64,000 nt of DNA from Macrostomum hystrix (GCA_950097015.1 CATNEN010000011.1:4216001-4280000), one strand, 5' to 3'. Positions 42,652-64,000 are shown, numbered from the stretch's first letter. Translations and numbers: made by a program. Notes: generated from the letters alone by a model not told the origin.

Positions 42652-42652
42652 C

Positions 42653-42665
42653 TGGTGGCAGCGGT
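42653..42665 (+). promoter_or_regulatory. Primer-binding site complementary to tRNA-Leu 3' end
   Basis: TGGTGGCAGCGGT is the reverse complement of ACCGCTGCCACCA, the 3' end of animal tRNA-Leu (AAG/UAG type). Confidence 0.85.
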
Positions 42666-42671
42666 CTCAGC

Positions 42672-43466
42672 ATGACTAAGCAAGAATCTTTACTGCCGCA
42701 AAAGTTCAGCGGCGCCGGCAGTGACTCAAATGTCAGAATGTGGCTAAGCATGTTTGAAGACTTCGCCGATGACAGCGACTGGGACGATAAGAAGAAGGCG
42801 AAGAAGTTGAAGTTGCTGCTGTCTGGAGAGGCACAGATCTTTGTGTGGGAACTTCCAGACGAAAAGAAAGTGAGCTACGAGCAGCTTAAGGTGGAGCTCA
42901 TCGGGCACTTCGGCGACAGCCTGAGCAGCTACCGGGCGATGGAGGAGTTTGAGGAACGCAAACGTCGGCCAAATGAGTCTTTGAGAGAGCTGGCGTACAA
43001 CCTCAAGCTGCTGCACCTCCGGGCTCGGCCAGACGACTCTGTGGACGCCAGGGAGAAGGACGTGAAGTTCCGCTTGATGCGCCTCCTCCCAGCAGCTGTA
43101 AGAGATACGCTGCTCAAAGACCAGGACGCGGACTCCTGTCCGTTGACAGTCCTGATTGACCGGGCGGCCCGCATTGAGTTGGTGAGTCGCCAGTCATCAG
43201 CGACGTCAGCAGCCGTGACGGCGGAGGACAGTCGGATCAGCCGTCTGGAGCAGCAGGTTCAGCAGCTGGCTGCAGGTGTGCGAACGGGAGCCGCAGGCAA
43301 GGAAAGCCGTCAAAGGGCCATCAAGTGCTTCAGCTGCGGGGAAGTTGGCCACATCGCGAGGCAGTGCCCGAGAGCGGCAGGAGCCCGCTGCAGCAGGTGC
43401 TCAGGCAAGGGGCACACGGCGGCGGTCTGCCCGACACCAGCTGCACAGCCGCAGGGAAACTGCTGA
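42672..43466 (+). CDS. gag: Gypsy Gag (264 aa) with two CCHC zinc knuckles
   Basis: PQKFSG..WL..FE..A..W..K..L...L.GEA capsid-like region; CFSCGEVGHIARQC and CSRCSGKGHTAAVC. Confidence 0.93.
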   Translation: MTKQESLLPQKFSGAGSDSNVRMWLSMFEDFADDSDWDDKKKAKKLKLLLSGEAQIFVWELPDEKKVSYEQLKVELIGHFGDSLSSYRAMEEFEERKRRPNESLRELAYNLKLLHLRARPDDSVDAREKDVKFRLMRLLPAAVRDTLLKDQDADSCPLTVLIDRAARIELVSRQSSATSAAVTAEDSRISRLEQQVQQLAAGVRTGAAGKESRQRAIKCFSCGEVGHIARQCPRAAGARCSRCSGKGHTAAVCPTPAAQPQGNC

Positions 43467-46400
43467 GGGTCGGCAGCCTGGGGCCAGCGCCGACCCCCTC
43501 TCAAGGGGCCCACAGATCAGCGTCGTCCATCTTTGTGCCAGTGCGTTTCGGCAGGCACAGCTCGCCCGCCCTGCTGGACACGGGCGCGCAGATTTCGCTG
43601 ATGGACAAGTCACTGTACGACAAGCTTGACTGCCGGCTCGACTGCAGCGACATCAGCGTCATGCCGACCTCTGTCGACGGCTCGCGGCTGCGCTGCCTTG
43701 GCCTGACGACGGCGGAGGTTGCGATCGGCAGCGCGATTCGAGCGCGGCACAGTTTTACCGTGGTGGACGGCATCCAGCCTAGACTGATTCTCGGCATGGA
43801 CTTCATCGGCCGGGTGTCGCAGACGGTGACCATCGACATGAAGGAAGGCGTCGTCCGGTTCGACAGCGATACGGTGGCTTTCAGCAGCGAGCAGCCGCGG
43901 GCCAGTTGCCGCCTGGTGCCAAGCGTTCTGGTGGCGCGCGTGGCGGTCAACACGGAGCTGCCGGCGCGGAGTGAGAAGGTCGTATGGCTCCGGGTGGACT
44001 CCAGCCGTGAGCAGGGGGTGTTCGAGCCCTGCGAGGACTTCGTAGCAGCCACGGCGGTGCTTTCGGCGCGCGTGCTGACTATCTCGGACGACGGCCGAAT
44101 CCCCGTCAAGATGTGCAACCTGGCCGAGGAGCCCGTGCTGCTGTACGCCAATAAAGCCGTCGGGACGTTCGAGGGTGCGATGGCCGGGGGGAGGAGCGAC
44201 TATCTCCAGGAGGACCCCCTCGGCTGGAACATCAACCCGGAGCTGTCCGAGGCGGATGCGGAGAAGCTGCGCCAGCTGCTGGAGCAAAACGAGGACCTTT
44301 TCGCAAGGCACGAGTACGACCTGGGCACGACGGAGCTGCTGCAGCACAGGATAGATCTGGAGCCCGGAACGCGGCCGCACAGGCAGGTTCAGCGACGTCT
44401 GCCTCTGTCCGTGCGGGACCAGGTAGACAAGAAGATCGGCCAGATGCTGGACAGCGGCATCATCGAGCCGTCCATGTCTCCTTGGGCCAGCAACCTCCTG
44501 GTGGTGCGCAAGAAGAACGGCGACATCAGGCTCTGCACCGACTGGCGACAGCTGAACGCCTGCACAGTCAAGGACGCCTACCCGCTGCCGCATCTGCAGC
44601 AAGCCATGGACGCACTGGTCGGCTGTTCCTGGTTCTCCACCATCGATTGCCGGCAGGGTTATCACCAGGTGGAGGTGGCAGAGGAAGACCGGCCAAAGAC
44701 TGCCTTCTACTCCACCCGCGGCCTGATGCAGTTCCGCAAGATGGGCTTCGGGATGTGCAACGCCCCAGCGACATTTCAGCGCCTTATGGAGCTCGTCATG
44801 TCCGGCTTATCCTGGGAGGTGGTGCTGACCTACATCGATGACATCATCGTCTTCAGCAGAACCTTCAACGAGCATCTGGCGCGGCTAGCACAGGTCCTTC
44901 AGCGGCTTCGAGGGGCCGGGCTCAAGCTGCACAGGGCGAAGAGTGTCTTCGGCCACCGCCAGGTGCTGTACCTGGGGCACCGGGTCAGCGAGCAGGGCAT
45001 CGCGCCAGACCCGAGCAAGGTGGACGCCATCCGCAGCATGCCCAGCCCGACGACAGCAGAGGAGGTGAAGCGGTTCCTCGGCATGCTAGGCTTCTATCGC
45101 CGCTTCATCCAGGACTTCAGCCAGACTGCGAGGGTGCTGCACGACGTCAGCCAGACAGCGAGAGACTTTAGATGGAGCAGCAGTTGCGAGCGGGCGTTCA
45201 ACGAGCTGAAGGACAAGTTGACGACTGCCCCGGTGCTGCGGCTGCCCGACTTCAGCAAGCAGTTCGTTTTGAGCTGCGACAGCAGCCAGTTCGCAGTGGG
45301 CGCCGTGCTCAGCCAGTTGCACGGGGACGCTGAGCTGCCTGTGGCTTTCGCATCGCGCACGCTCAACAAGGCGGAGCGAAATTACTCGGCGACAGACCGG
45401 GAGCTGCTGGCGCTGGTGTGGAGCTTGAAGCACTTCAGAACGTACTTGCTCAGTGTTCCCAGCTTCACCGTCTACTCCGACCATCGGCCGCTTCAGGGAC
45501 TGCTGGCGACCAAGGACCCGGAAGGCAGGCTGGCGCGGTGGCTGTCTACGCTGCAGCAGTTCTCCTTCTCGCTGCTGTACCGGCCAGGCCGGGAGAACGT
45601 TGTGCCGGACGCACTGAGCCGGGTGGCCGGCACGCGCCTGCAGCCCCGCTGGGAGGCCGCGCGCCTGCATGAGGAGCAGCGGCAGGACACGCTACTGAGC
45701 AAGGCGTTCCAGGCGCTAGCGACAGGAATCGACAATCTGTCTGACACCTGGGCGGCGCAGGTTCGCGAGCTGCTGGACGGGGCATCAATAAGTACGGCGG
45801 GCGTCCTGCTGTTCCACGGCAAGCCGGTCATTCCCAGCCACCTGCGGCCGCACTTCCTGCAGGAGGCGCATTCTAGCGACCAGAGCGCCCACCTCGGTGT
45901 TGACAGGACGGTGGCGAGGCTGGCGGAGCGCTGCTGGTGGCCGGGCCTGCGGCGGGACGTGGAGAACTGGGTGGCGAGCTGCGCCGTCTGCCTAACCAAG
46001 AAGAGTCCGACCAGGCCGCAGCGGGCACCGCTGCAGACGACAGGCCAGCCGACAGCGCCTTGGCAGCAGGTGCAGATCGATATTAAAGGCCCGCTGCCGC
46101 GCACGACAGACGGCAACGCCTACATCCTCAGCATGTGCGACACCTTCTCCAAGTGGATGGAGACATCGGCGCTGGCGACGATCGACGCCGTGACGGTGGC
46201 GGATGCGCTGCTCAGAGCCGTTGTGCTGCGGCACGGTGCCCCACAAGTGCTGCACAGCGACCAAGGACGGCAGTTTGAGAGCGACGTCTTCGTCCGGCTC
46301 TGCGAGCAGCTGGGCATCGAGAAAACTCGCACATCGCCATTCCACCCAAGCGGCAACGGCGTCGTGGAGCGCGGCAACCGGACACTGGGCGACATGCTGG

Positions 46401-47146
46401 CGACGGTCGTGTCGGAGAGCCAGCAGGACTGGGACCGGAAGCTGCACTACGTTACCTGGGCCTATAACACCTCTGTGCACAGCACCACCGGCCTCAGCCC
46501 GTACCAGGTCCTGCATGGCTGGCCGCCGCGGCTGGCGCTCGACAGCTGGCTGGTGGACGGCGACAAGGCGGCGAGCGGCAGCCCGCACGACTTTCTGCAG
46601 CAGACGCAAGCGAACCTGCAGGGCGCCTTTGACGCGGTGCACGGCCGGCTGCGGGACGCCCAGGCGGCGCGCAACCAGCGAGTCAACCAGGGTGCCAGAT
46701 TCGTGCCGTTTGAAGAGGGCCAGCTGGTAATGCTGCGCAACTCCGTCGTCAAGCGCGGCCAGACGCGGTGCCTCAGCGACAAATGGAAGGGGCCGTATCG
46801 GATCCTGCGGCGCCTCGGCGAGGTGAACTACCGCATCCAGGACCAGGCAGGCCGCCGGCGCAAGCTGGTGGTGCACCACGACCGGCTCCGACTCTTCATT
46901 CAGCGGCGGCCGTCGCTGGAGCTGCCTGCTGCCGCCGATGCCGACACGAACGCCAACGGCCTCGCCGTGCGACCGCCCAGTCCAGCGGCTGACCCGGGTG
47001 GCGATGCGGTGGTCGGCTGGCCGGAACCGGACCAAAACGTGCAGCCCGATGATCCGCCGGCGGCCCCGCCCGAGCCGGCCGAGGCTCTCCGACGCTCGGC
47101 GAGAGAACGCCGGCCTCCTGACTTTTACATGGCTGGCTTTGCTTGA
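43325..47146 (+). CDS. pol: Gypsy Pol (protease-RT-RNase H-integrase), uninterrupted; expressed as a Gag-Pol fusion
   Basis: LLDTGA, ILGMDF, PWASN, KTAF, YIDD, CDSS..AVGAVL, DHRPL, H..H..C..C, IDIKGP, HSDQGRQF, GVVER, WKGPYRI, VVHHDRL; the domain order is Ty3/Gypsy. Confidence 0.96.
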   Translation: MLQLRGSWPHREAVPESGRSPLQQVLRQGAHGGGLPDTSCTAAGKLLRVGSLGPAPTPSQGAHRSASSIFVPVRFGRHSSPALLDTGAQISLMDKSLYDKLDCRLDCSDISVMPTSVDGSRLRCLGLTTAEVAIGSAIRARHSFTVVDGIQPRLILGMDFIGRVSQTVTIDMKEGVVRFDSDTVAFSSEQPRASCRLVPSVLVARVAVNTELPARSEKVVWLRVDSSREQGVFEPCEDFVAATAVLSARVLTISDDGRIPVKMCNLAEEPVLLYANKAVGTFEGAMAGGRSDYLQEDPLGWNINPELSEADAEKLRQLLEQNEDLFARHEYDLGTTELLQHRIDLEPGTRPHRQVQRRLPLSVRDQVDKKIGQMLDSGIIEPSMSPWASNLLVVRKKNGDIRLCTDWRQLNACTVKDAYPLPHLQQAMDALVGCSWFSTIDCRQGYHQVEVAEEDRPKTAFYSTRGLMQFRKMGFGMCNAPATFQRLMELVMSGLSWEVVLTYIDDIIVFSRTFNEHLARLAQVLQRLRGAGLKLHRAKSVFGHRQVLYLGHRVSEQGIAPDPSKVDAIRSMPSPTTAEEVKRFLGMLGFYRRFIQDFSQTARVLHDVSQTARDFRWSSSCERAFNELKDKLTTAPVLRLPDFSKQFVLSCDSSQFAVGAVLSQLHGDAELPVAFASRTLNKAERNYSATDRELLALVWSLKHFRTYLLSVPSFTVYSDHRPLQGLLATKDPEGRLARWLSTLQQFSFSLLYRPGRENVVPDALSRVAGTRLQPRWEAARLHEEQRQDTLLSKAFQALATGIDNLSDTWAAQVRELLDGASISTAGVLLFHGKPVIPSHLRPHFLQEAHSSDQSAHLGVDRTVARLAERCWWPGLRRDVENWVASCAVCLTKKSPTRPQRAPLQTTGQPTAPWQQVQIDIKGPLPRTTDGNAYILSMCDTFSKWMETSALATIDAVTVADALLRAVVLRHGAPQVLHSDQGRQFESDVFVRLCEQLGIEKTRTSPFHPSGNGVVERGNRTLGDMLATVVSESQQDWDRKLHYVTWAYNTSVHSTTGLSPYQVLHGWPPRLALDSWLVDGDKAASGSPHDFLQQTQANLQGAFDAVHGRLRDAQAARNQRVNQGARFVPFEEGQLVMLRNSVVKRGQTRCLSDKWKGPYRILRRLGEVNYRIQDQAGRRRKLVVHHDRLRLFIQRRPSLELPAAADADTNANGLAVRPPSPAADPGGDAVVGWPEPDQNVQPDDPPAAPPEPAEALRRSARERRPPDFYMAGFA
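43454..43510 (+). promoter_or_regulatory. -1 programmed ribosomal frameshift signal (G GGA AAC + downstream hairpin/pseudoknot)
   Basis: Heptamer GGGAAAC at 43454-43460 in the correct gag phase; 6-nt spacer; 8-bp stem GGGTCGGC (43467-43474) / GCCGACCC (43489-43496); pol is in the -1 frame. Confidence 0.85.
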
Positions 47147-47172
47147 CTGAACTGCTTCTAGGGGGAAAGTAG

Positions 47173-47372
47173 TGTTAGCAGCTTAGAGTTCGCGGCCCGC
47201 AGTGTACACTGCGGGGGGTAGAGCGTACACGCCTGCGTGCGTGCTTGCGTGGCGTGATTGGGGGGTGGGTACGCCCACCCCAGTGTTTCTGGCCAAATAT
47301 AATAGTGCTAGCGAGCCGGTATGGCTCTTCGCGTATTTGTGTGCATGCTACCTGACAAACCAGCGTCTTACA
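47173..47372 (+). repeat. 3' LTR (200 bp), preceded by polypurine tract AGGGGGAAAGTAG (47160-47172)
   Basis: Same sequence as the 5' LTR; purine tract immediately upstream. Confidence 0.96.
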
Positions 47373-48531
47373 GCGCGAACATTTCTCGCAGGCGCGGGAC
47401 CAGTGCCTCGGCCGTCGTTGTCTGCATGAGCTGCACCTCTGGGAATCTCGAGTATCTGTCCACGCACACCAGCAGCATGTTGTTGTTGATCGGGCCTACA
47501 AAGTCAGCCCCAATCGACAACCAGGCGCCCTTAGGGATAGGCGTCGGCTGTAGAGGCGTAGCCCGAACGGCTGGCGTGTGAGACGTGATGGCACAGCTGC
47601 GGCACCGACTGACGAACTCCTCCGCTTGTGTTGCCATTCTCGGCCACCAGACCTTGCTGCTGAGCCTTGCGGTCGTCTTCTGCGAGCACTGGTGTCCTTG
47701 GTGCGCCAGCTCGAGCATCTGCTGCCGTAGAGCTGCTGGCACGACAATCCGCTGATGCCGAAGAAGAACTCCGTCTACCGCCGACAGCTCCTCTCGCAGC
47801 ACGTGGAGTGACCGCATCTCAGCGCTAGAGCGGTCCCATTGGCCGCCTTGCATCGCTGCTATCGCTGCCCGGATAACTGGGTCGCTGGCTGAGCTCTTGC
47901 GGATGTCTTCGAGCGTGAGCGCCTTCGGGACAGCCGCCTGCGCTACCTCGTTTATGTAGGCCTCTCTCAGCTGCTCGCTGGTCCTACTTCCTTCAGCGTT
48001 TAGAGGCTGCCTGCTGAGTATGTCTGCAGCATTGGACGCTCCTGGCTGGTATTCGACCTTGAATACCTGGATGCTGGATACGCAGCGCCATACTCTCGAC
48101 TCGTGGAGGCGGCCGTGACCCTGGCGCATACATGGCTGTCAGCGGCTTGTGGTCGGAGATCACCGTGAATTCGGGCGATACATACAAGTAGTACTCGAAC
48201 TTCAGGCAGCCGAACTTCACGGCGAGCGCCTCTTTTTCGGTCTGCGAATATCGCCGCTCGACGTCGGAGAAAATCCGGCTCGCGTATGCGACTGGCCGCG
48301 AACTGCCGTCGTGCTGTACTTGCGCCAGGATTCCGCCGAGTCCGGTTGGTCCCGCGTCCACAATCAGCTGTGTCCGTAGCCGCTTGTCGTAGAATGCCAG
48401 CGTTGTCGGCTCCGCAATGCTGCGCTTTAGCTGCGCAAAGGCGCTGGCCTGGTCGGCGCCCCACTGCCAGTTGGTGTTCTTCCGGGTCAGGCGTCGCAGC
48501 GGCTCCGCCACCTTGCCCAGCTGTGGCGTGA

Positions 48532-49030
48532 GGGATTCTAGTTTTACAGATAGGATTCTAGCTAGACAGATGGGATTCTAGTTTTACAGATAGGATTCTA
48601 GCTAGACAGATGGGATTCTAGTTTTACAGATGGGATTCTAGTTTTACAGATGGGATTCTAGTTTTACAGATGGGATTCTAGTTTTACAGATGGGATTCTA
48701 GCTAGACAGATGGGATTCTAGTTATACAGATGGGATTCTAGTTAGACAGATGGGATTCTAGATATACAGATGGGATTCTAGTCATACAGATGGGATTCTA
48801 GTTATACAGATGGGATTCTAGTTATACAGATGGGATTCTAGTCATACAGATGGGATTCTAGTTAGACAGATGGGATTCTAGCTAGACAGATGGGATTCTA
48901 GTTAGACAGATGGGGTTCTAGTTTTACAGATGGGATTCTAGTTAGACAGATGGAATTCTAGTTCGAAAAATGGGATTCTAGTTCAGAAAATGGGATTCTA
49001 GTTCAAAAAATGGGATTCTAGTTCGAAAAT
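48532..49030. repeat. 20-bp minisatellite (GGGATTCTAGTTTTACAGAT), ~25 units
   Basis: Direct reading; units drift toward GGGATTCTAGTTCAAAAAAT at the right end. Confidence 0.97.
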
Positions 49031-49835
49031 CTGTGCGAGCATCTTTTCAGTGTACGGTATCAGTATGAGAGTGTGCTCAGGAGTCAGCGGAATGGGTAGA
49101 ATTGTAAAAACGCTATGTGCTATTGCCCGCGGCCTGGCTGAGCATGACTCATTGTGAGACCCCACTCATGCAGACCCTTCAAAATCCTGTCCCTCCGCTC
49201 TCTATTATTATTCGGGTTGATTGGAACTTGAAAGTGATTTTTCGATCACGATTCGGAATGTGCGATTCAATTGAATGTATGTCGATCACGTACAGAAATT
49301 TGGGGCGTCAATTATTGCTTGACTGCACTAAAATCGTTTCTTCTATTCTGGCTCATCGTTCCATATACATGACAAATTGAGTTTTCTATGGCTTACTTTC
49401 AAACGCTAGGCCTTAGATTCCATAGGCCGTTCCGTTTTGCATGTCCACTGTTTCACATAGCGCGACAAAAGCAATGCAATAATTATGTGTTAGAGAGAAA
49501 CTCCAAAAAGTCAGAAAGTTTTCTAATAGTACAAACCGAAAAGTTCATCTCGGAAAAGTCAAGCATGCAGGCAAAAAGCAAAGTAAAGCTGAAATTTGAC
49601 ATAGACAAAAGGCGTGTACCCCTGTGTCAGCCAGCGCTGCCATAGACCGAGCCAGCTCGGACCTGTATTTTCTGCAGCATTTAGAAGGGGCAGCGGCCCG
49701 AAAAGAAGAATGAAATCCAAAAACAGACAACCCTCGACTAAACATTGGCCAATTCTACTCAGCCGTTGCAAATTGGATCAAGAATTGACTGCAATTCAAC
49801 TGCCACCTGCCAGCTAATCGACCAAATCTAACTGC

Positions 49836-51558
49836 ATGGGCCGTTCGGAATCGAAGCTGGCAATCATGACGACTATGGAGCTGGTTATTGTTGGCGTGTT
49901 ACTTGCAGTTGGAGACATTCAGCTGGCTGATTGCATTAAATGTATCTCGTCGAGGTTGCCACAATCAGTCGAAACATATATGAATGACAATAGTTCTACT
50001 ACTTGCACTCGTCGCACAGTCACCAAGTGTAAAGTGGAATATTATAAAAACATCAATGTGGTGAGCGACCGAATGAAATAAACTAAGTAAATTAGCATAT
50101 CAGTTCGAATTCATAAAGTAACAGTTTGCACGCGGAAACCCTTTTTAGAATCTGGAATATGGTTGCGGCGCCTGTCCCGCTACGCAGGACGCTAAACATT
50201 TTTGCAAAGACTGCACAGGTGATGACTGCAATAAAGCGAGTGCATTAAACGTGACCGATGATCTAGTAGAATGCCTCGAATACATACTTGCGGGTCAGTT
50301 CTTTATCAACGGAAACGGTAAACCAATAGGGCCAAATAAAATTTTTTGTCTACCATCGGAAAAGTGCTTCAAATATGAAATTTTTCCTGGAACAAAATAC
50401 CATGAGATCTACATCGGCTGTAAGACGATGGTCGAAATGTATCATCAAGTCGTGTTGGGATTTTATAGCTATTCTCAAGTTGCTCGGAACTTTAAACCTT
50501 ACGAATGTACACCAAACGAAAACTATTCTGATTGTATTTCAATAACCACGACTGCTCGGTTAGCAACCGTGACTGCTTCGGGTGCAGCCACGACTGGTGC
50601 TGGTGCAGCCACGACTGGTGCTGGTGCAGCCACGACTGGTGCTGGTGCAGCCACGACTGCTGCTGGTGCAGCCACGACTGGTGCTGGTGCAGCCACGACT
50701 GGTGCTGGTGCAGCCACGACTGCTGCTGGTGCAGCCACGACTGGTGCTGGTGCAGCCACGACTGGTGCTGGTGCAGCCACGACTGCTGCTGGTGCAGCCA
50801 CGACTGGTGCTGGTGCAGCAACGACTGCTGCTGGTGCAGCCACGACTGCTGCTGGTGCAGCCACGACTGCTGCTGGTGCAGCAACGACTGGTGCTGGTGC
50901 AGCAACGACTGCTGCTGGTGCAGCCACGACTGCTGCTGGTGCAGCCACGACTGGTGCTGGTGCAGCAACGACTGCTGCTGGTGCAGCCACGACTGCTGCT
51001 GGTGCAGCCACGACTGCTGCTGGTGCAGCCACGACTGGTGCTGGTGCAGCCACGACTGCTGCTGGTGCAGCCACGACTGGTGCTGGTGCAGCCACGACTG
51101 CTGCTGGTGCAGCCACGACTGCTGCTGGTGCAGCCACGACTGGTGCTGGTGCAGCCACGACTGGTGCTGGTGCAGCCACGACTGGTGCTGGTGCAGCCAC
51201 GACTGCTGCTGGTGCAGCCACGACTGGTGCTGGTGCAGCCACGACTGCTTCGGGTGCAGCCACGACTGGTGCTGGTGCAGCCACGACTGGTGCTGGTGCA
51301 GCCACGACTGCTGCTGGTGCAGCCACGACTGGTGCTGGTGCAGCCACGACTGGTGCTGGTGCAGCCACGACTGCTCGGCCTGCAGCAAGGACTGCTGCTG
51401 GTGCAGCCACGACTGCTGGGCCTGCAGCCACGACTGCTGCTGATCCAGCCAGGACTGCTGCGGGTGCTTCAAGCCGGACTTCGCCGTCCGGATCCGTACT
51501 GCTGGGCTGCACGATGCTGCTAGCGATGCTGCTGCCTGTGCTGTTGACTTTGCCCTGA
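49836..51558 (+). CDS. Predicted GPI-anchored three-finger (Ly6/uPAR-like) mucin-stalk surface protein, copy 1 (~544 aa); exons 49836-50060 and 50149-51558
   Basis: Signal peptide; phase-0 88-nt GT-AG intron (GTG|gtgagc..tttttag|AAT); 8-Cys domain ending [17 protein letters not shown]; second 6-Cys domain; ~38 TT(G/A)AGAA heptads; small-residue region (GASS) then a hydrophobic tail [20 protein letters not shown] with no cytoplasmic domain. Confidence 0.85.
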
Positions 51559-51982
51559 TATTTTTTGCATGTTTCGTTCGATGTGCTGATTTTGGAATTT
51601 ATTAAAAGTTAATTTATTAATTGATCATATTGATGTTCTGAAAGTTCTGTCAGAAAATGCACTGAAAAATCAAAGTGCTAAAAGTCTCTTCTCAATAACA
51701 AAAACTGACTGGTTCTCGTTGCAAATCTCAAGCAGGCCAAGTTTGTAATATTTTACAACTAAATATATTTCTGTCTGAACTAAATAGTTATTCAATACTC
51801 AAGCTGATAAGCTGCACTGATCAGTTAATACTGGCTTGTCGTTTAAAAGTTTTAAGTGCTTAAAAATTGACGCTCAATTAGTATCACAATTAGCTAATTT
51901 TATTCCAGTATTTAAATATCTTAAATAAAATCAGAACTGTAAATATTACCTACGATGAGAAAACGAATGCAACATTCAATCG

Positions 51983-53447
51983 ATGTGAACAGCCACCTTC
52001 AGTCCATCTGAATAGCCACCTTCAGTCCATCTGAATAGCCACCTTCAGTCCATGTGAACAGCCACTTTCAGTCCATGTGAATAGCCACCTTCAGTCCATG
52101 TGAATAGCCACCTTCAGTCCATGTGAATTGTCACCTTCAGTCCATGTGAATATAGCCACCTTCAGTCCATCTGAACAGCCACCTTCAGTCCATGTGAATA
52201 GCCACCTTCAGTCCATCTGAATAGCCACCTTCAGTCCATCTGAACAGCCACCTTCAGTCCATCTGAACAGCCACCTTCAGTCCATCTGAATATAGCCACC
52301 TTCAGTCTATCTGAACAGCCACCTTCAGTCCATGTGAACAGCCACCTTCAGTCCATCTGAACAGCCATCTTCAGTCCATGTGAATAGCCACCTTCAGTCC
52401 ATGTGAATAGCCACCTTCAGTCCATGTGAATATAGCCACCTTCAGTCCATGTGAATAGTCACCTTCAGTCCATGTGAATAGCCACCTTTAGTCCATGTGA
52501 ATAGCCACCTTCAGTCCATGTGAATTGTCACCTTCAGTCCATGTGAATATAGCCACCTTCAGTCCATCTGAACAGCCACCTTCAGTCCATGTGAATAGCC
52601 ACCTTCAGTCCATGTGAATAGCCACCTTCAGTCCATGTGAATAGCCACCTTCAGTCCATCTGAACAGCCACCTTCATTCCATGTGAATAGCCACCTTCAG
52701 TCCATGTGAATAGCCACCTTCAGTCCATCTGAACAGCCACCTTCAGTCCATCTGAACAGCCACCTTCAGTCCATGTGAATATAGCCACCTTCAGTCCATC
52801 TGAACAGCCACCTTCAGTCCATCTGAACAGCCACCTTCAGTCCATGTGAATATAGCCACCTTCAGTCCATGTGAATAGCCACCTTCAGTCCATGTGAATA
52901 GCCACCTTCAGTCCATGTGAATTGTCACCTTCAGTCCATGTGAATAGCCACCTTCAGTCCATGTGAATTGTCACCTTCAGTCCATGTGAATAGCTACCTT
53001 CAGTCCATGTGAATTGTCACCTTCAGTCCATGTGAATAGCCACCTTCAGTCCATGTGAATTGTCACCTTCAGTCCATGTGAACAGCCACCTTCAGTCCAT
53101 CTGAATAGCCACCTTCAGTCCATCTGAACAGCCACCTTCAGTCCATCTGAACAGCCACCTTCAGTCCATCTGAACAGCCACCTTCAGTCCATGTGAATAT
53201 AGCCACCTTCAGTCTATCTGAACAGCCACCTTCAGTCCATGTGAACAGCCACCTTCAGTCTATGTGAATAGCCACCTTCAGTCCATGTGAATAGCCACCT
53301 TCAGTCCATGTGAACAGCCACCTTCAGTCTATGTGAATAGCCACCTTCAGTCCATGTGAACAGCCACCTTCAGTCCATGTGAATAGCCACCTTCAGTCCA
53401 TGTGAATAGCCACCTTCAGTCCATGTGAATAGCCACCTTCAGTTCAT
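51983..53447. repeat. 23-bp satellite (GAATAGCCACCTTCAGTCCATGT), ~60 units
   Basis: Direct reading; variants include AAC/AAT, CT/GT, +AT and TTGTC. Confidence 0.97.
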
Positions 53448-54526
53448 CAGAATGACCAGATGGCCAGATCGCAGCTGCGAAGCTCGCTGGATCATTTACA
53501 TCGTTTGGATGGACTGGAGGAGATGACACAGTGTCAGGAATACCTTGACCTTGGAGAATTGTAAGGTTGTGAATGGCTGTCGATTTGACTCATCGGAATG
53601 TGAGCTAATGCGAAGCTTTTTGACGGATGGATCTCGGGGAAGTGAGTGCTGTGCGTAAATTGGTGTCGTCCTTTCACTACAAGAAGCGATCAATGTGCTA
53701 GGACTTGTGTGAGCAATGAGAGGCCAGTGGCTTTAGAGCGGATGCGGAACTCACGATCGGAGCCCCATGATGGAGATTGATACGATGATTGGATTAGGAC
53801 CTAGATTTAGGTTCGTCGTCGGAGCGGTACCCGATGGAGTCGTTTCTGTCTTCATAAAAGTTAACAAGATAGGAGTTGAAGGCCGGAAGCCCTTGTTGAG
53901 AAGTTATAGGAGACTTGCAAGGTTGGAGATGGGATATTGGTTTTACTGCTCAACGGTTTCAGTAAGCTAGCCAAAGACTTTGATTCAGAAAAAATAGAGC
54001 CCGCCATTGAATAGCGAAAATTATAAATCTAACACAACTTAAAATATGATGTTATTTTGTCGTCGATTCTATCAGCAAAATAGACATCGTGTTTTGTTTA
54101 TGTTAAGCAAATCTCGGAATATTAGCGGCAATCTGAAAGCTTAGATGATAAAAATAATTATTGAAGACTGTCTACATCATGTCATATTGTAATAAGGTTA
54201 TTTATTGTCAGTAAAAAGGCTTTGTCTACGCTTTGCTTTGTATAATATTAAATTTGTGGTAGGGCCTTAAGTCGTTAAGTCGTTAATAGATTCGTAATTT
54301 CGTGTGATTACAATCTGCACTTCACTGTTGACTCTAGTCTTGAGTTGCTGGCTATGACTTATGTTATGAGAATGAAGCAGTCAGAGCAGCGAAACACTGA
54401 AGCCGTATAGCTAGCAAAACTTTAGAAGTATTACTAGCAAGTTTTGCCCTCCTTCGGGGAGCAGAAATATTTTTAATTCGTCTAGTATATACTTTTTTGC
54501 AGCAGTATTTTCAGCTTTTCTAAGCT

Positions 54527-57500
54527 ACAATGATCCCCAGTGGATGATGATCACCTAGTTGGCAATGATCACCCAGTTGACAATGATCCCCAGTTGACAA
54601 TGATCCCCAGTTGATGATGATCACCCAGTTGACAATGATCCCCAGTTGACAATGATCCCCAGTTGATGATGATCACCTAGTTGGCAATGATCACCCAGTT
54701 GACAATGATCCCCAGTTGACAATGATCCCCAGTTGACAATGATCCCCCAGTTGACAATGTTCCCCAGTTGACAATGATCCCCCAGTTGACAATGATCCCC
54801 AATTGACAATGATCCCCCAGTTGACAATGATCCCCAATTGACAATGATCCCCCAGTTGACAATGATCCCCAGTTGACAATGATCCCCCAGTGGATGATGA
54901 TCACCTAGTTGGCAATGATCACCCAGTTGACAATGATCCCCAGTTGACAATGATCCCCAGTTGACAATGATCCCCCAGTTGACAATGATCCCCAGTTGAC
55001 AATGATCCCCCAGTTGACAATGATCCCCAATTGACAATGATCCCCCAGTTGACAATGATCCCCCAGTTGATGATGATCAAGCAGTTGACAATGATCCCCC
55101 AGTTGACAATGATCCTCAGTTGACAATGATCCCCCAGTTGACAATGATCCCCAGTTGATGATGATCAAGCAGTTGACAATGATCCCCCAGTTGACAATGA
55201 TCCCCCAGTTGACAATGATCACAAAGTTGACAATGATCCCCCAGTTAACAATGATCACCCAGTTGACAATGATCACCCAGTTGACAATGATCCCCCAGTT
55301 AACAATGATCGCCCAGTTGACAATGATCCCTCAGTTGACCATGATCCCCCATTTGATGATGACTCCCCATTGATAATGATCCCCAGTTGACAATGTTCCC
55401 CCAGTCGACAATGATCCCCCAGTTGATGATAATCAAGCAGTTGACAATGATCACCCAGTTGACAATGATCACCCAGTTGACAATGATCACCCAGTTGACA
55501 ATGATCCCCCAGTTAACAATGATCGCCCAGTTGACAATGATCCCTCAGTTGACCATGATCCCCCATTTGATGATGACTCCCCATTGATAATGATCCCCAG
55601 TTGACAATGTTCCCCCAGTCGACAATGATCCCCCAGTTGATGATAATCAAGCAGTTGACAATGATCACCCAGTTGACAATGATCCCCCAGTTGACCATGA
55701 TCCCCCAGTTGACAATGATTCCCCAGTTGATGATGATCACCCAGTTGACCATGATCATCCATTTGATGATGATCACCCAGTTGACCATGATCATCCATTT
55801 GATGATGATCACCCAGTTGACCATGATCATCCATTTGATGATGATCACCCAGTTGACCATGATCATCCATTTGATGATGATCACCCAGTTGACAATGTTC
55901 GCCCCAGTTGACAATGATCCCCCAGTTGATGATGATCCCCCAGTTGACCATGATCATCCATTTGATGATGATCACCCAGTTGACCGTGAACCCCCATTTG
56001 ATGATGATCACCCAGTTGACAATGATCCCCAGTTGACCATGATCCCATATTTGATGATGACTCCACATTGATGATGATCCCCCAGTTGACAATGATCCCC
56101 CAGTTGACAATGATCCCCCAGTTGACAATGATCACAAAGTTGACAATGATCCCCCAGTTGACAATGATCACAAAGTTGACAATGATCCCCCAGTTGACAA
56201 TGATCACCCAGTTGACAATGATCCCCCAGTTAACAATGATCGCCCAGTTGACAATGATCCCTCAGTTGACCATGATCCCCCATTTGATGATGACTCCCCA
56301 TTGATAATGATCCCCAGTTGACAATGTTCCCCCAGTCGACAATGATCCCCCAGTTGATGATAATCAAGCAGTTGACAATGATCACCCAGTTGACAATGAT
56401 CACCCAGTTGACAATGATCACCCAGTTAACAATGATCGCCCAGTTGACAATGATCCCTCAGTTGACCATGATCCCCCATTTCATGATGACTCCCCATTGA
56501 TAATGATCCCCAGTTGACAATGTTCCCCCAGTCGACAATGATCCCCCAGTTGATGATAATCAAGCAGTTGACAATGATCACCCAGTTGACAATGATCCCC
56601 CAGTTGACAATGATCGCCCAGTTGACAATGATCCCTCAGTTGACCATGATCCCCCATTTGATGATGACTCCCCATTGATAATGATCCCCAGTTGACAATG
56701 TTCCCCCAGTCGACAATGATCCCCCAGTTGATGATAATCAAGCAGTTGACAATGATCACCCAGTTGACAATGATCCCCCAGTTGACCATGATCCCCCAGT
56801 TGATGATGATCACCCAGTTGACCATGATCATCCATTTGATGATGATCACCCAGTTGACCATGATCATCCATTTGATGATGATCACCCAGTTGACCATGAT
56901 CATCCATTTGATGATGATCACCCAGTTGACAATGTTCGCCCCAGTTGACAATGATCCCCCAGTTGATGATGATCCCCCAGTTGACCATGATCATCCATTT
57001 GATGATGATCACCCAGTTGACAATGATCCCCAGTTGACAATGATCCCCCAGTTGACAATGTTCCCCAGTTGACAATGATCCCCCAGTTGACAATGATCCC
57101 CAATTGACAATGATCCCCCAGTTGACAATGATCCCCAATTGACAATGATCCCCCAGTTGACAATGATCCCCAGTTGACAATGATCCCCCAGTGGATGATG
57201 ATCACCTAGTTGGCAATGATCACCCAGTTGACAATGATCCCCAGTTGACAATGATCCCCAGTTGACAATGATCCCCCAGTTGACAATGATCCCCAGTTGA
57301 CAATGATCCCCCAGTTGACAATGATCCCCAATTGACAATGATCCCCCAGTTGACAATGATCCCCCAGTTGATGATGATCAAGCAGTTGACAATGATCCCC
57401 CAGTTGACAATGATCCTCAGTTGACAATGATCCCCCAGTTGACAATGATCCCCAGTTGATGATGATCAAGCAGTTGACAATGATCCCCCAGTTGACAATG

Positions 57501-59460
57501 ATCCCCCAGTTGACAATGATCACAAAGTTGACAATGATCCCCCAGTTAACAATGATCACCCAGTTGACAATGATCACCCAGTTGACAATGATCCCCCAGT
57601 TAACAATGATCGCCCAGTTGACAATGATCCCTCAGTTGACCATGATCCCCCATTTGATGATGACTCCCCATTGATAATGATCCCCAGTTGACAATGTTCC
57701 CCCAGTCGACAATGATCCCCCAGTTGATGATAATCAAGCAGTTGACAATGATCACCCAGTTGACAATGATCACCCAGTTGACAATGATCACCCAGTTGAC
57801 AATGATCCCCCAGTTAACAATGATCGCCCAGTTGACAATGATCCCTCAGTTGACCATGATCCCCCATTTGATGATGACTCCCCATTGATAATGATCCCCA
57901 GTTGACAATGTTCCCCCAGTCGACAATGATCCCCCAGTTGATGATAATCAAGCAGTTGACAATGATCACCCAGTTGACAATGATCCCCCAGTTGACCATG
58001 ATCCCCCAGTTGACAATGATTCCCCAGTTGATGATGATCACCCAGTTGACCATGATCATCCATTTGATGATGATCACCCAGTTGACCATGATCATCCATT
58101 TGATGATGATCACCCAGTTGACCATGATCATCCATTTGATGATGATCACCCAGTTGACCATGATCATCCATTTGATGATGATCACCCAGTTGACAATGTT
58201 CGCCCCAGTTGACAATGATCCCCCAGTTGATGATGATCCCCCAGTTGACCATGATCATCCATTTGATGATGATCACCCAGTTGACCGTGAACCCCCATTT
58301 GATGATGATCACCCAGTTGACAATGATCCCCAGTTGACCATGATCCCATATTTGATGATGACTCCACATTGATGATGATCCCCCAGTTGACAATGATCCC
58401 CCAGTTGACAATGATCCCCCAGTTGACAATGATCACAAAGTTGACAATGATCCCCCAGTTGACAATGATCACAAAGTTGACAATGATCCCCCAGTTGACA
58501 ATGATCACCCAGTTGACAATGATCCCCCAGTTAACAATGATCGCCCAGTTGACAATGATCCCTCAGTTGACCATGATCCCCCATTTGATGATGACTCCCC
58601 ATTGATAATGATCCCCAGTTGACAATGTTCCCCCAGTCGACAATGATCCCCCAGTTGATGATAATCAAGCAGTTGACAATGATCACCCAGTTGACAATGA
58701 TCACCCAGTTGACAATGATCACCCAGTTAACAATGATCGCCCAGTTGACAATGATCCCTCAGTTGACCATGATCCCCCATTTGATGATGACTCCCCATTG
58801 ATAATGATCCCCAGTTGACAATGTTCCCCCAGTCGACAATGATCCCCCAGTTGATGATAATCAAGCAGTTGACAATGATCACCCAGTTGACAATGATCCC
58901 CCAGTTGACAATGATCGCCCAGTTGACAATGATCCCTCAGTTGACCATGATCCCCCATTTGATGATGACTCCGCATTGATAATGATCCCCAGTTGACAAT
59001 GTTCCCCCAGTCGACAATGATCCCCCAGTTGATGATAATCAAGCAGTTGACAATGATCACCCAGTTGACAATGATCCCCCAGTTGACCATGATCCCCCAG
59101 TTGATGATGATCACCCAGTTGACCATGATCATCCATTTGATGATGATCACCCAGTTGACCATGATCATCCATTTGATGATGATCACCCAGTTGACCATGA
59201 TCATCCATTTGATGATGATCACCCAGTTGACAATGTTCGCCCCAGTTGACAATGATCCCCCAGTTGATGATGATCCCCCAGTTGACCATGATCATCCATT
59301 TGATGATGATCACCCAGTTGACAATGTTCGCCCCAGTTGACAATGATCCCCCAGTTGATGATGATCCCCCAGTTGACCATGATCATCCATTTGATGATGA
59401 TCACCCAGTTGACAATGATCCCCAGTTGACCATGATCCCATATTTGATGATCAAATATGA
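54527..59460. repeat. 17/18-bp satellite (CAGTTGACAATGATCCCC) with a 2301-bp higher-order repeat
   Basis: Identical ORF-track translations recur at +2301 (54905/57206, 55155/57456, 55487/57788, 56230/58531). Confidence 0.97.
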
Positions 59461-59486
59461 TCATCAAAATTGATTGGGCGTGATTG

Positions 59487-60767
59487 GGCGTGATTGGGGG
59501 GTGGGTACGCCCACCCCAGTGTTTCTGGCCAAATATAATAGTGCTAGCGAGCCGGTATGGCTCTTCGCGTATTTGTGTGCATGCTACCTGACAAACCAGC
59601 GTCTTACAGCGCGAACATTTCTCGCAGGCGCGGGACCAGTGCCTCGGCCGTCGTTGTCTGCATGAGCTGCACCTCTGGGAATCTCGAGTATCTGTCCACG
59701 CACACCAGCAGCATGTTGTTGTTGATCGGGCCTACAAAGTCAGCCCCAATCGACAACCAGGCGCCCTTAGGGATAGGCGTCGGCTGTAGAGGCGTAGCCC
59801 GAACGGCTGGCGTGTGAGACGTGATGGCACAGCTGCGGCACCGACTGACGAACTCCTCCGCTTGTGTTGCCATTCTCGGCCACCAGACCTTGCTGCTGAG
59901 CCTTGCGGTCGTCTTCTGCGAGCACTGGTGTCCTTGGTGCGCCAGCTCGAGCATCTGCTGCCGTAGAGCTGCTGGCACGACAATCCGCTGATGCCGAAGA
60001 AGAACTCCGTCTACCGCCGACAGCTCCTCTCGCAGCACGTGGAGTGACCGCATCTCAGCGCTAGAGCGGTCCCATTGGCCGCCTTGCATCGCTGCTATCG
60101 CTGCCCGGATAACTGGGTCGCTGGCTGAGCTCTTGCGGATGTCTTCGAGCGTGAGCGCCTTCGGGACAGCCGCCTGCGCTACCTCGTTTATGTAGGCCTC
60201 TCTCAGCTGCTCGCTGGTCCTACTTCCTTCAGCGTTTAGAGGCTGCCTGCTGAGTATGTCTGCAGCATTGGACGCTCCTGGCTGGTATTCGACCTTGAAT
60301 ACCTGGATGCTGGATACGCAGCGCCATACTCTCGACTCGTGGAGGCGGCCGTGACCCTGGCGCATACATGGCTGTCAGCGGCTTGTGGTCGGAGATCACC
60401 GTGAATTCGGGCGATACATACAAGTAGTACTCGAACTTCAGGCAGCCGAACTTCACGGCGAGCGCCTCTTTTTCGGTCTGCGAATATCGCCGCTCGACGT
60501 CGGAGAAAATCCGGCTCGCGTATGCGACTGGCCGCGAACTGCCGTCGTGCTGTACTTGCGCCAGGATTCCGCCGAGTCCGGTTGGTCCCGCGTCCACAAT
60601 CAGCTGTGTCCGTAGCCGCTTGTCGTAGAATGCCAGCGTTGTCGGCTCCGCAATGCTGCGCTTTAGCTGCGCAAAGGCGCTGGCCTGGTCGGCGCCCCAC
60701 TGCCAGTTGGTGTTCTTCCGGGTCAGGCGTCGCAGCGGCTCCGCCACCTTGCCCAGCTGTGGCGTGA
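59487..60767 (-). mobile_element. Duplicated partial LTR (59487-59608, + strand) and older Gypsy RNase H/integrase fragment (- strand)
   Basis: All ORF-track translations are identical to those at 47.3-48.5 kb. Confidence 0.95.
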
Positions 60768-61306
60768 GGGATTCTAGTTTTACAGATAGGATTCTAGCTA
60801 GACAGATGGGATTCTAGTTTTACAGATAGGATTCTAGCTAGACAGATGGGATTCTAGTTTTACAGATGGGATTCTAGTTTTACAGATGGGATTCTAGTTT
60901 TACAGATGGGATTCTAGTTTTACAGATGGGATTCTAGTTTTACAGATGGGATTCTAGCTAGACAGATGGGATTCTAGTTATACAGATGGGATTCTAGTTA
61001 GACAGATGGGATTCTAGATATACAGATGGGATTCTAGTCATACAGATGGGATTCTAGTTATACAGATGGGATTCTAGTCATACAGATGGGATTCTAGTTA
61101 TACAGATGGGATTCTAGTCATACAGATGGGATTCTAGTTAGACAGATGGGATTCTAGCTAGACAGATGGGATTCTAGTTAGACAGATGGGGTTCTAGTTT
61201 TACAGATGGGATTCTAGTTAGACAGATGGAATTCTAGTTCGAAAAATGGGATTCTAGTTCAGAAAATGGGATTCTAGTTCAAAAAATGGGATTCTAGTTC
61301 GAAAAT
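60768..61306. repeat. 20-bp minisatellite, second copy, ~27 units
   Basis: 40 bp longer than the first copy. Confidence 0.97.
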
Positions 61307-62154
61307 CTGTGCGAGCATCTTTTCAGTGTACGGTATCAGTATGAGAGTGTGCTCAGGAGTCAGCGGAATGGGTAGAATTGTAAAAACGCTATGTGCTATT
61401 GCCCGCGGCCTGGCTGAGCATGACTCATTGTGAGACCCCACTCATGCAGACCCTTCAAAATCCTGTCCCTCCGCTCTCTATTATTATTCGGGTTGATTGG
61501 AACTTGAAAGTGATTTTTCGATCACGATTCGGAATGTGCGATTCAATTGAATGTATGTCGATCACGTACAGAAATTTGGGGCGTCAATTATTGCTTAACT
61601 GATCAACCGAAAGACAACAAAAGCGTCTTGTTGTCGCTGTGATAAACTAAAATCGTTTCTTCTATTCTGGCTCATCGTTCCATATACATGACAAATTGAG
61701 TTTTCTATGGCTTACTTTCAAACGCTAGGCCTTAGATTCCATAGGCCGTTCCGTTTTGCATGTCCACTGTTTCACATAGCGCGACAAAAGCAATGCAATA
61801 ATTATGTGTTAGAGAGAAACTCCAAAAAGCCAGAAAGTTTTCTAATAGTACAAACCGAAAAGTTCATCTCGGAAAAGTCAAGCATGCAGGCAAAAAGCAA
61901 AGTAAAGCTGAAATTTGACATAGACAAAAGGCGTGTACCCCTGTGTCAGCCAGCGCTGCCATAGACCGAGCCAGCTCGGACCTGTATTTTCTGCAGCATT
62001 TAGAAGGGGCAGCGGCCCGAAAAGAAGAATGAAATCCAAAAACAGACAACCCTCGACTAAACATTGGCCAATTCTACTCAGCCGTTGCAAATTGGATCAA
62101 GAATTGACTGCAATTCAACTGCCACCTGCCAGCTAATCGACCAAATCTAACTGC

Positions 62155-64000
62155 ATGGGCCGTTCGGAATCGAAGCTGGCAATCATGACGACTATGGAGC
62201 TGGTTATTGTTGGCGTGTTACTTGCAGTTGGAGACATCCAGCTGGTTGATTGCATTAAATGTATCTCGTCGAGGTCGCCACAATCAGTCGAAACATATAT
62301 GAATGACAATAGTTCTACTACTTGCACTCGTCGCACAGTCACCAAGTGTAAAGTGGAATATGATAAAACCATCAAAGTGGTGAGCGACCGAATGAAATAA
62401 ACTAAGTAAATTAGCATATCAGTTCGAATTCATAAAGTAACAGTTTGCACGCGGAAACCCTTTTTAGAATCTGAAATATGGTTGCGGCGCCTGTCCCGCT
62501 ACGCAGGATGCAAACATTTTTTGCAAAGACTGCACAGGTGATGACTGCAATAAAGCGAGTGCATTAAACGTGACCGATGATCTAGTAGAATGCCTCGAAT
62601 ACGTACTTGCGGGTCAGTTCTTTAAGAACGGAAACGTTACACCAGCAGGGCCAAATAAACTTTTTTGTCTACCATCGGAAAAGTGCTTCAAATATGAAAT
62701 TCTTCCTGGAACAAAATACCATGAGATCTACATCGGCTGCAAATCGGATGTCGAACTCTATCGTCAAGGCGCGTTGCGGCTCCATAACTATTCTCAAGTT
62801 GCTCGGAACTTTAAACCTTACGAATGTACACCAAACAAAAACTATTCTGATTGTATTTCAATAACCACGACTGCTCGGTTAGCAACCGTGACTGCTTCAG
62901 GTGCAGCCACGACTGGTGCTGGTGCAGCCACGACTGGTGCTGGTGCAGCCACGACTGGTGCTGGTGCAGCCACGGCTGCTGCTGGTGCAGCCACGACTGG
63001 TGCTGGTGCAGCCACGACTGGTGCTGGTGCAGCCACGACTGGTGCTGGTGCAGCCACGACTGGTGCTGGTGCAGCCACGACTGGTGCTGGTGCAGCCACG
63101 ACTGGTGCTGGTGCAGCCACGACTGCTGCTGGTGCAGCCACGACTGGTGCTGGTGCAGCCACGACTGGTGCTGGTGCAGCCACGACTGGTGCTGGTGCAG
63201 CCACGACTAGTGCTGGTGCAGCCACGACTGGTGCTGGTGCAGCCACGACTGCTGCTGGTGCGGCCACGACTGGTGCTGGTGCAGCCACGACTGGTGCTGG
63301 TGCAGCCACGGCTGGTGCTGGTGCAGCCACGACTGCTGCTGGTGCAGCCACGACTGGTGCTGGTGCAGCCACGACTGCTGCTGGTGCAGCTACGACTGCT
63401 GCTGGTGCAGCCACGACTGGTGCTGGTGCAGCCACGACTGCTGCTGGTGCAGCCACGACTGGTGCTGGTGCAGCCACGACTGGTGCTGGTGCAGCCACGA
63501 CTGCTGCTGGTGCGGCCACGACTGGTGCTGGTGCAGCCACGACTGCTGCTGGTGCAGCCACGACTGGTGCTGGTGCAGCCACGACTGGTGCTGGTGCAGC
63601 CACGACTGGTGCTGGTGCAGCCACGACTGGTGCTGGTGCAGCCACGACTGGTGCTGGTGCAGCCACGACTGCTGCTGGTGCAGCCACGACTGGTGCTGGT
63701 GCAGCCACGACTGGTGCTGGTGCAGCCACGACTGGTGCTGGTGCAGCCACGACTAGTGCTGGTGCAGCCACGACTGCTGCTGGTGCGGCCACGACTGGTG
63801 CTGGTGCAGCCACGACTGGTGCTGGTGCAGCCACGGCTGGTGCTGGTGCAGCCACGACTGCTGCTGGTGCAGCCACGACTGGTGCTGGTGCAGCCACGAC
63901 TGCTGCTGGTGCGGCCACGACTGGTGCTGGTGCAGCCACGACTGCTGCTGGTGCAGCCACGACTGGTGCTGGTGCAGCCACGACTGCTGCTGGTGCAGCC
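62155..64000 (+). CDS. Three-finger mucin-stalk surface protein, copy 2 (3' end beyond window); exons 62155-62379 and 62468->64000
   Basis: Same exon structure and Cys pattern as copy 1; open frame through at least ~52 heptads to the window edge. Confidence 0.85.

Follow-up and report, generated by a model that had tools for sequence, protein, structure and literature searches.

The 64,000-nt stretch of Macrostomum hystrix DNA analyzed here (C11:4216001-4280000, hereafter the window, in an assembly of 220,453,370 bp and 42 contigs) contains two tandem copies of a two-exon gene, referred to as copy 1 and copy 2, that encodes a putative surface protein with a Cys-rich, two-module ectodomain carried on a repetitive stalk. 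The two copies are almost identical in their flanks and wholly identical in their intron, whereas their exons differ by 6%. They belong to a gene family in which conserved blocks alternate sharply with variable (V) blocks, the latter consisting of the first part of module 1 (V1) and module 2 (V2). The explanation that we favor, with moderate confidence and as one joint judgment on all of its parts, is that the two genes are intact, very young tandem duplicates of one family member, that their V blocks differ through exchange with paralogs or alleles together with small insertions and deletions (indels), and that selection on the loops between the cysteines is either relaxed or in favor of diversity.

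A Young Tandem Duplication

Self-BLAST of the window revealed a tandem repeat of a 12.2-kb unit, present once in full and again from 59487 on (Table 1). Each unit consists, in order, of the 122 nt at the 3' end of a gypsy long terminal repeat (LTR), a minus-strand remnant of an older pol gene, a 20-nt minisatellite, ~800 nt of unique sequence, the gene, a 23-nt minisatellite, a 1.1-kb spacer, and an 18-nt minisatellite. Between 47251-49325 and 59487-61601 there is a single substitution in ~2075 aligned nt, besides two additional 20-nt repeat units, and 49327-51467 pairs with 61646-63786 downstream of this. The junction at 59440-59500 is unique sequence that joins the end of the 18-nt array to the middle of the LTR, with a short motif repeated at 59470-59500.

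The breakpoint at 47251 lies inside the 3' LTR of a full-length gypsy element with open gag and pol open reading frames (ORFs), which encode protease, reverse transcriptase (RT), RNase H, and integrase domains, and its two LTRs are identical at 200 of 200 positions. Because the breakpoint falls within this LTR and the LTRs are still identical, the duplication is younger than a very recent insertion, and the 6% divergence of the exons would therefore have been imported or generated afterwards.

All three minisatellites of the 12-kb unit (20, 23, and 18 nt) have changed in copy number between the twin units.

Divergence between the Twin Copies

Over the 210 codons compared, copies 1 and 2 differ at 39 of 630 nt, resulting in 26 replacement codons and 5 silent-only codons. 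The 509 nt upstream of the ATG contain three substitutions and one 43-nt indel, while the tail and 3' flank differ at 2/496 positions and the spacer between the arrays at 9/1101. When the unique non-coding flanks are pooled, the contrast is 15/4269 (0.35%) against 39/645 in the exons, where 2.3 differences would be expected (Poisson p 4e-34); the intron, at 0/88, has a probability of 0.007 under an even spread. Within the exons the differences are clustered, with 18 neighboring pairs no more than 3 nt apart compared to 6.5 expected (p 1e-4), and they comprise 20 transitions (Ts) and 19 transversions (Tv) involving all bases. Inspection of the alignment showed that the KH/NI difference at 50193-50198 (twin 62512-62517) consists of a 1-nt deletion and a nearby 1-nt insertion that recode two codons, and that the ATG/GAT difference at 50428-50430 (twin 62747-62749) consists of paired 1-nt indels that recode one. 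These two patches are better explained as compensated frameshifts than as multi-base substitutions.

An earlier note on this DNA had arrived at the same 26:5 count, which we reproduced exactly, and had reported the identical intron, the near-identical upstream sequence, patchy changes, and two extra N-glycosylation sequons (NVT and NYS) in copy 2; all of these are present as described, including the quoted patches, and the comparison of exon, intron, and flank divergence that it proposed came out as given above. Its figure of 14 conserved cysteines in the mature domain has to be corrected to 15. Its reading of the codon count as a sign of positive selection did not hold up as it stood. With replacement and silent sites in a ratio of 3.6:1, the pair has a dN of 0.066, a dS of 0.058, and a dN/dS of 1.14 (NG86), and the exons carry ~7.7 silent changes where 0.5 would be expected at the flank rate (~16-fold, p 8e-7). 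Since silent sites are elevated as well and dN/dS is 1.14, the 26:5 count is not evidence of positive selection, and a more general lesson is that a high ratio of replacement to silent codons proves nothing of the kind when silent sites share in the elevation. New point mutations under selection cannot raise silent divergence, so either diverged sequence was imported or the local input of mutations is high.

The Gene Family in the Genome

A profile search with the exon 2 protein found at least 50 family matches in the genome, of which 46-47 are open; the larger hidden repertoire that the earlier note had surmised is thus real. A DNA search of the genome located a third intact copy (copy 3, L003) at C11:2.42 Mb with 91% identity, and a truncated fourth copy at C11:4.707 Mb, in which the promoter is missing along with exon 1, the intron, and one half of exon 2. 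Contig C39 carries >40 copies with 72-80% identity, and C38 carries one. The 28 loci that we modelled follow a common plan, with a stalk that ranges from none to several hundred residues and a tail that is hydrophobic, or a frame that ends early in some members.

A word-index search of public proteins with exon 2 (region 1-140) returned no match, and neither did a hidden Markov model (HMM) profile built from 26 members when compared with 1.84 billion representative proteins at E<=0.001. Because no homologs were found in protein, Pfam, or PDB sequence searches, we treat the family as lineage-specific and detectable only in this Macrostomum genome. The family, its design of two modules, stalk, and GPI-like (glycosylphosphatidylinositol-like) tail, and its occurrence in a free-living flatworm appear to be undescribed.

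Several family members have unusual structures. In the fourth copy (C11:4707411-4707647; L024, L033), ~240 nt of unrelated sequence link an upstream spacer that is 99% identical to 49031-49367 with the latter half of exon 2, followed by the stalk and the 23-nt array; this copy has variants in common with copy 1 over one stretch, and with copy 2 over the following one. Copy 3 carries, in its upstream spacer, a tRNA-derived SINE-like insertion (short interspersed nuclear element) of ~570-600 nt that is absent from copies 1 and 2. On the minus strand of C39 (4408072-4422777; L034, L035, L004) is a concatenated family member, whose exons run from the end of module 1 through module 2 and the stalk to the start of the next module 1, and from there into the conserved intron donor. 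One of these exons has an open frame of 4902 aa, mostly Thr/Ala/Gly stalk, and the whole resembles a family member of giant size, mucin-like and made of several units.

Gene and Protein Organization

Both twin copies consist of a 225-nt exon 1 (counted from the ATG at 49836 in copy 1 and 62155 in copy 2), an 88-nt GT..AG intron in phase 0, and an in-frame exon 2. The start codon is probably the later ATG, at 49866 and 62185 respectively, because this is the one kept by copy 3 and by all sequenced C39 paralogs, none of which has an ATG at the position equivalent to 49836. Both ORFs are intact. That of copy 2 continues beyond the window to a stop at window-equivalent 64633, and has ~79 stalk heptads compared to 43 in copy 1.

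The ectodomain contains 15 conserved cysteines, nine in module 1 and six in module 2, all of them invariant. The hydrophobic N-terminus, together with a run of small residues and ~20 hydrophobic residues that end the protein, corresponds to a GPI-type layout, and the proteins are probably located at the surface and lipid (GPI)-anchored. The stalk is predicted to be of mucin type, built of Thr/Ala/Gly heptads and very variable in length.

Constant and Variable Blocks across the Family

The division into constant and variable blocks recurs throughout the family. Identity within the C39 cluster is 95% in the 150 nt upstream, 97% in the signal peptide, 94% in the intron, and 93% in the first 90 nt of exon 2, compared to 80%, with indels, in the mature part of exon 1 (V1). 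V2 is hypervariable, with indels between invariant cysteines, and the family alignment bears out that the variation is set between the residues of a conserved Cys scaffold. The intron differs at 1/88 positions between copies 1 and 3, and is ~94% identical within C39 and 86% identical between subfamilies. Three constant blocks, namely the promoter, 5' untranslated region (5'UTR), and signal peptide; the intron with the first ~130 nt of exon 2; and the tail with the 3'UTR, are 98-99% identical between sisters. These blocks are conserved as DNA regardless of coding, which points to recent common descent or homogenisation and not to protein constraint. The family is a mosaic of conserved flanks and intron with shuffled variable exon elements.

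Ten independent sister pairs allowed the rates of these blocks to be compared. Divergence is 1.08% in the intron and 1.0% in the upstream 150 nt, and the constant coding parts have a silent divergence (pS) of 2.0% and a replacement divergence (pN) of 1.5%. In the V regions pS is 3.9% and pN 5.3%, both above the non-coding rate (p 1e-6 and 2e-20 respectively), with a pN/pS of 1.34 (p 0.12). Tree-based dN/dS is 1.36 for V1 (p 0.015, uncorrected) and 1.07 for V2, and no column has a replacement excess that survives correction in a per-site test, which is weakened by recombination and by the indel-rich alignment. A mean omega near or above 1 that includes invariant cysteines is compatible with some positively selected sites in the loops. 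Further, Ts:Tv is 76:120 in the V regions and 74:64 in the flanks (0.63 vs. 1.16, p 0.008); this excess of transversions agrees with old or exchanged sequence and with indel-type events better than with fresh point mutations, but a special mutational input would account for it as well, and these sources are not told apart by it.

Evidence for Exchange of Variable Blocks

Several signals indicate that V blocks have been exchanged. Within ~100 nt of V2, the four C11 copies group two by two in all three possible ways. The pairwise homoplasy index (PHI) test is significant within the C39 cluster (p<=0.001) and not significant over all 28 sequences (p 0.12). V1 and V2 reject each other's maximum likelihood (ML) trees, with differences in log likelihood of 147 and 333 (approximately unbiased (AU) test, p 3e-39 and 1e-44 respectively), and recognizable cassette types reappear in differing combinations across the family. 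A second twin pair on C39, L027 and L028, lies 15.6 kb apart and has 0-7 mismatches per 100 nt over 3.4 kb, with the exception of a replaced segment of ~60-100 nt in V2. At the level of the family, there is therefore good support for an exchange of pre-existing sequence. Two other lines of argument were set aside: the sharing of variant states with other paralogs (81%) is uninformative, as hypervariable columns share bases by chance, and a mosaic drawn from copies 1-3 alone cannot show incompatibility, for which the fourth copy is required.

As to mechanism, we infer that V blocks may be swapped between paralogs or alleles via ectopic gene conversion or unequal recombination, and that small indels, including compensated frameshift pairs, contribute further change. 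The loops would be under relaxed or diversity-favoring selection, with the Cys scaffold retained. In the twin pair, the duplication would have followed the gypsy insertion, with the exon divergence brought in or produced later; alternatively, unequal exchange between two already divergent alleles may itself have made the duplication. The youngest differences, whose immediate source is absent from this inbred genome, may stem from lost paralogs, from alleles of an outbred ancestor, or from local mutation.

Several observations weigh against this account. For none of the patches private to copy 1 or copy 2 does the assembly contain an exact donor, and >85% identity in the V2 of the C11 subfamily is reached by no more than four copies. 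The best other genome matches of the L027 and L028 cassettes are at 84% and 91%, so that recent conversion from an extant paralog is not demonstrated; any donors must then have been lost, or be alleles that the inbred line does not carry. The identical intron is bordered by differences within 4 nt and 7 nt, which simple conversion tracts do not readily explain unless the donors have the same intron. Diversifying selection, for its part, is not shown, as dN/dS is not significantly above 1. Finally, polishing and the purging of haplotigs could have made the fine-scale phase of the mosaic partly artefactual (PMC10468722). The patchwise gene conversion put forward in the earlier note thus stands as far as exchange is concerned, given the partitions and the PHI and AU tests, and falls short in that no donor was identified.

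Alternative Explanations

An assembly artefact, in which haplotypes or collapsed paralogs were laid in tandem or polishing mixed the variants of paralogs, appears unlikely; under it, the twins would be alleles or their mosaic spurious. The ~220 Mb assembly of 42 contigs was made from the inbred line SR1 with Canu, followed by Arrow and Pilon polishing with short reads, and haplotigs were purged even in this line (PMC10468722); the region is also full of kilobase-scale minisatellites. However, the line has a predicted inbreeding coefficient (F) of ~0.998, and the unit junction is unique sequence with neither a gap nor a repeat collapse. The two units differ structurally (43 vs. ~79 stalk repeats, the 43-nt indel, and an 18-nt array of 4.9 vs. 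1.3 kb), and the same twin pattern recurs at L027/L028. Polishing may swap variants, but it cannot invent them. A simple allelic reading, with two haplotypes stitched together, is likewise unlikely.

We consider it quite unlikely that the twins are instead old duplicates, whose flanks, introns, and constant exon parts were homogenised while balancing or diversifying selection shielded the V blocks, comparable to the introns and peptide-binding exons of MHC genes. Such concerted evolution would account for constant blocks that are conserved as DNA whatever their coding status; it suits the C39 cluster well, and shares ground with the explanation that we favor. The twin unit, however, starts in the LTR of an element whose LTRs are identical, and its transposon debris and kilobases of spacer are at 99.6-99.95% identity, for which recent duplication is the simpler account.

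Local germline hypermutation of the V blocks, through error-prone repair or a mutator as proposed for conotoxin genes, we regard as very doubtful. It would explain why silent and replacement sites rise jointly with omega near 1, and it agrees with the low Ts:Tv of the V regions, the clustered changes, the compensated 1-nt indel pairs, the lack of exact donors, and the sparing of intron and promoter. Yet no mechanism or linked enzyme is visible at the locus and the changes are not base-specific, a low Ts:Tv is equally expected from old or misaligned sequence, and the genealogical conflict between V1 and V2, together with the shared cassettes, indicates exchange of existing sequence. A diversity-generating retroelement was rejected, as the changes are not adenine-specific (Ts 20, Tv 19), the unit contains no template copy, and the adjacent RT belongs to an ordinary LTR retrotransposon.

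Positive selection on fresh point mutations after the duplication is highly improbable: the replacements lie mostly outside the Cys scaffold, V1 has the raised tree-based dN/dS reported above, and copy 2 gains two sequons, but this reading is opposed by the silent excess, by a dN/dS that is 1.14 in the pair and not significant in ten pairs, by several patches that are multi-nucleotide or indel events, and by variants that occur in incompatible combinations with copies 3 and 4.

Predicted Fold and Relation to Ly6/uPAR Proteins

The earlier note had assigned the twins to the GPI-anchored Ly6/uPAR (LU) proteins. The exons were searched separately, and module 1, which is split by the intron, was thereby covered as two halves, whereas the fold models are of module 2. 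In this setting, no Pfam family came up at E<=1 when hmmscan was run on both exons of the two copies, and 26 members at E<=10 gave only insignificant single rows (cobra-type toxin 0.68, DUF753 2.1). The family profile likewise matched nothing relevant among PDB sequences.

Two AlphaFold models of module 2, one of copy 1 (predicted local distance difference test (pLDDT) 70-87 in the domain) and one of a C39 member (mean 76.8), both consist of a four-stranded sheet followed by helices, with moderate confidence. Foldseek against PDB returned nothing at E<=0.001 for either model. In a wide VIA-align search, LU proteins occupied ~20 of the top 24 rows for one model and the top 5 rows for the other, over whole domains and with Z scores of only 2.9-4.3; they included alpha-neurotoxin, GPIHBP1, irditoxin, SLURP-2, TEX101, Prod1, CD59, Lynx1, uPAR, and CD177. 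Rows 1-4 and 6 from the ESM Atlas were UPAR_LY6 clusters (Bouncer-like, Ly6H, and others), at low TM scores of 0.37-0.42. As in LU domains, module 1 begins with C-x2-C, and it ends in C-x2-C-x4-C-N, close to the canonical LU ending (CC-x4-5-CN, in domains of 8-10 Cys) but with the CC pair split by two residues; module 2 has six cysteines and no CN motif. An LU-like fold is fairly likely for module 2 according to the models, while the case for membership in the Ly6/uPAR family is weak. Of the earlier assignment, the sequence-based part found no support, and what remains is the consistent top ranking of LU proteins among low-scoring fold matches.

On the predicted structure, 14 of the 18 module 2 residues that differ between copies 1 and 2 map to the tips of fingers 1 and 2 or to the helix region. 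Across the family, entropy is 2.35 bits in the predicted helix segment, 1.56 in loops, 1.31 in strands, and 0.49 in the constant part.

Comparison with Known Systems

A Cys framework with conserved non-coding sequence and shuffled hypervariable loops is, by analogy, a type of system known from toxins, pheromones, and sea-urchin immune genes. The PMF pheromones, of which >30 isoforms make up a multigene family, have a Cys scaffold and a three-finger-type fold, and combine hypervariable coding sequence with unusually conserved non-coding parts of the transcript. They are, however, small, secreted, single-domain proteins for which positive selection has been demonstrated, whereas the twin family has two modules, a mucin-type stalk, and a GPI-like tail, shares no sequence homology with them, and is one in which selection is undemonstrated. 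In snake three-finger toxins and conotoxins, the mature peptide evolves at an accelerated pace beside a conserved signal peptide, UTRs, and introns (PMC3847720). They resemble the twin family in their conserved signal peptide and intron, in hypervariable loops between fixed cysteines, and in variation at exposed residues. However, they are secreted constituents of venom, and their omega clearly exceeds 1, in contrast to an omega of ~1.1-1.4, elevated silent sites, and shuffled blocks in the twin family.

The Sp185/333 (SpTransformer) genes of sea urchins are clustered two-exon genes with conserved leader, intron, and flanks, a mature region that is a mosaic shuffled by recombination, and microsatellites that flank the genes. 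Their products differ in being Cys-poor, intrinsically disordered, and immune-induced, and have no homology to the twin family. The fungal Als/Flo adhesins combine an N-terminal binding domain with a fast-changing Thr-rich repeat stalk and a GPI signal in recombination-prone families; folds and kingdoms are unrelated, and the analogy is one of design only.

LU proteins such as CD59, GPIHBP1, TEX101, CD177, and Bouncer share the signal peptide, a Cys-rich module, and the GPI-like tail (PMC4839075; 10.1101/354688; PMC13719153), and to these likenesses may be added the variant motif at the end of module 1 and the place of LU proteins at the head of the module 2 fold lists. The twin family differs from them in its lack of a Pfam or PDB sequence match, its weak fold similarity (Z at most 4.3, TM at most 0.44), its 9 + 6 cysteines, a loop 3 with a predicted helix, and a long repeat stalk. 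A 2026 survey counted ~12 LU proteins per flatworm genome, compared to ~50 genes of the twin family here.

A more far-reaching reading, which we put forward only tentatively, is that the family is a germline repertoire of ~50 LU-like receptors, diversified by cassette exchange and possibly targeted mutation, and kept by selection to bind and recognize microbes, sperm or eggs, or conspecific tissue. If so, it would be a flatworm counterpart of Sp185/333-type or variable-receptor-type systems. To our knowledge, no diversified recognition repertoire has been described in flatworms. The family offers good material for such questions, with ~50 intact genes, sharp constant and variable blocks, and young twins that would catch diversification in progress, in a genus used as a model, for which RNA interference, in situ hybridisation, and inbred lines are available.

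Features of the Window

Table 1. Coordinates of the twin units, their genes, and associated repeats, counted from the first letter of the window.
Feature	Position	Strand	Remarks
Tandem duplication unit 1	47251..59486	+	12.2 kb; left breakpoint within 3' LTR; self-BLAST
Tandem duplication unit 2	59487..64000	+	Extends beyond the window to ~window-equivalent 68994
Gypsy-type LTR retrotransposon, full-length	42452..47372	+	LTRs of 200 bp at 42452-42651 and 47173-47372
Older gypsy pol remnant	47368..48511	-	RNase H and integrase zinc-finger fragments; twin at 59604-60747, ORF translations identical
20-nt minisatellite	48532..49023		24.6 copies; twin at 60768-61299 has 26.6 copies
43-nt segment	61602..61645		In copies 2 and 3, not in copy 1
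23-nt minisatellite	51975..53447		Downstream of gene; likewise after copies 2, 3, and 4
18-nt minisatellite	54527..59439		275 copies, closes unit 1; array of unit 2 only ~1.3 kb
Copy 1 promoter and 5'UTR constant block	49368..49865	+	Last 300 nt identical to copy 2; 88-95% conserved family-wide
Copy 1 exon 1 (from probable start)	49866..50060	+	Predicted signal peptide 49866-49931, then V1 49932-50060 (first four Cys of module 1)
Copy 1 intron	50061..50148	+	88 nt, phase 0, within central constant block
Copy 1 exon 2 constant framework	50149..50274	+	End of module 1 (C-x2-C-x4-C-N) and linker
Copy 1 V2	50275..50535	+	Cys module 2: 6 Cys, predicted LU-like fold; 27/39 differences from copy 2
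Copy 1 stalk	50571..51467	+	21-nt repeat, 42.7 copies, Thr/Ala/Gly heptads
Copy 1 C-terminal tail	51468..51558	+	Small residues, then ~20 hydrophobic up to stop; GPI-signal-like
Copy 2 exon 1 (from probable start)	62185..62379	+	Earlier in-frame ATG at 62155
Copy 2 intron	62380..62467	+	88 nt
Copy 2 exon 2	62468..64000	+	Ectodomain to ~62889, stalk from 62900; ORF leaves window

Besides the twin units, the window contains three tandem, intronless ORFs on the plus strand (4346-5329, 6029-7066, and 9407-10705) that are paralogs of one another with ~77-80% DNA identity and resemble seven-helix receptors. Three further ORFs at 21519-22451 (minus), 26027-26770 (plus), and 31236-31757 (minus) have a common C-terminal region with several N-glycosylation sequons and form a separate small family, one member of which has a signal-peptide-like start. 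Between 32259 and 37483 on the plus strand is a GC-rich non-LTR retrotransposon with ORF1, endonuclease, reverse transcriptase, and RNase H-like ORFs, and a fragment related to it is found at 30068-30680.

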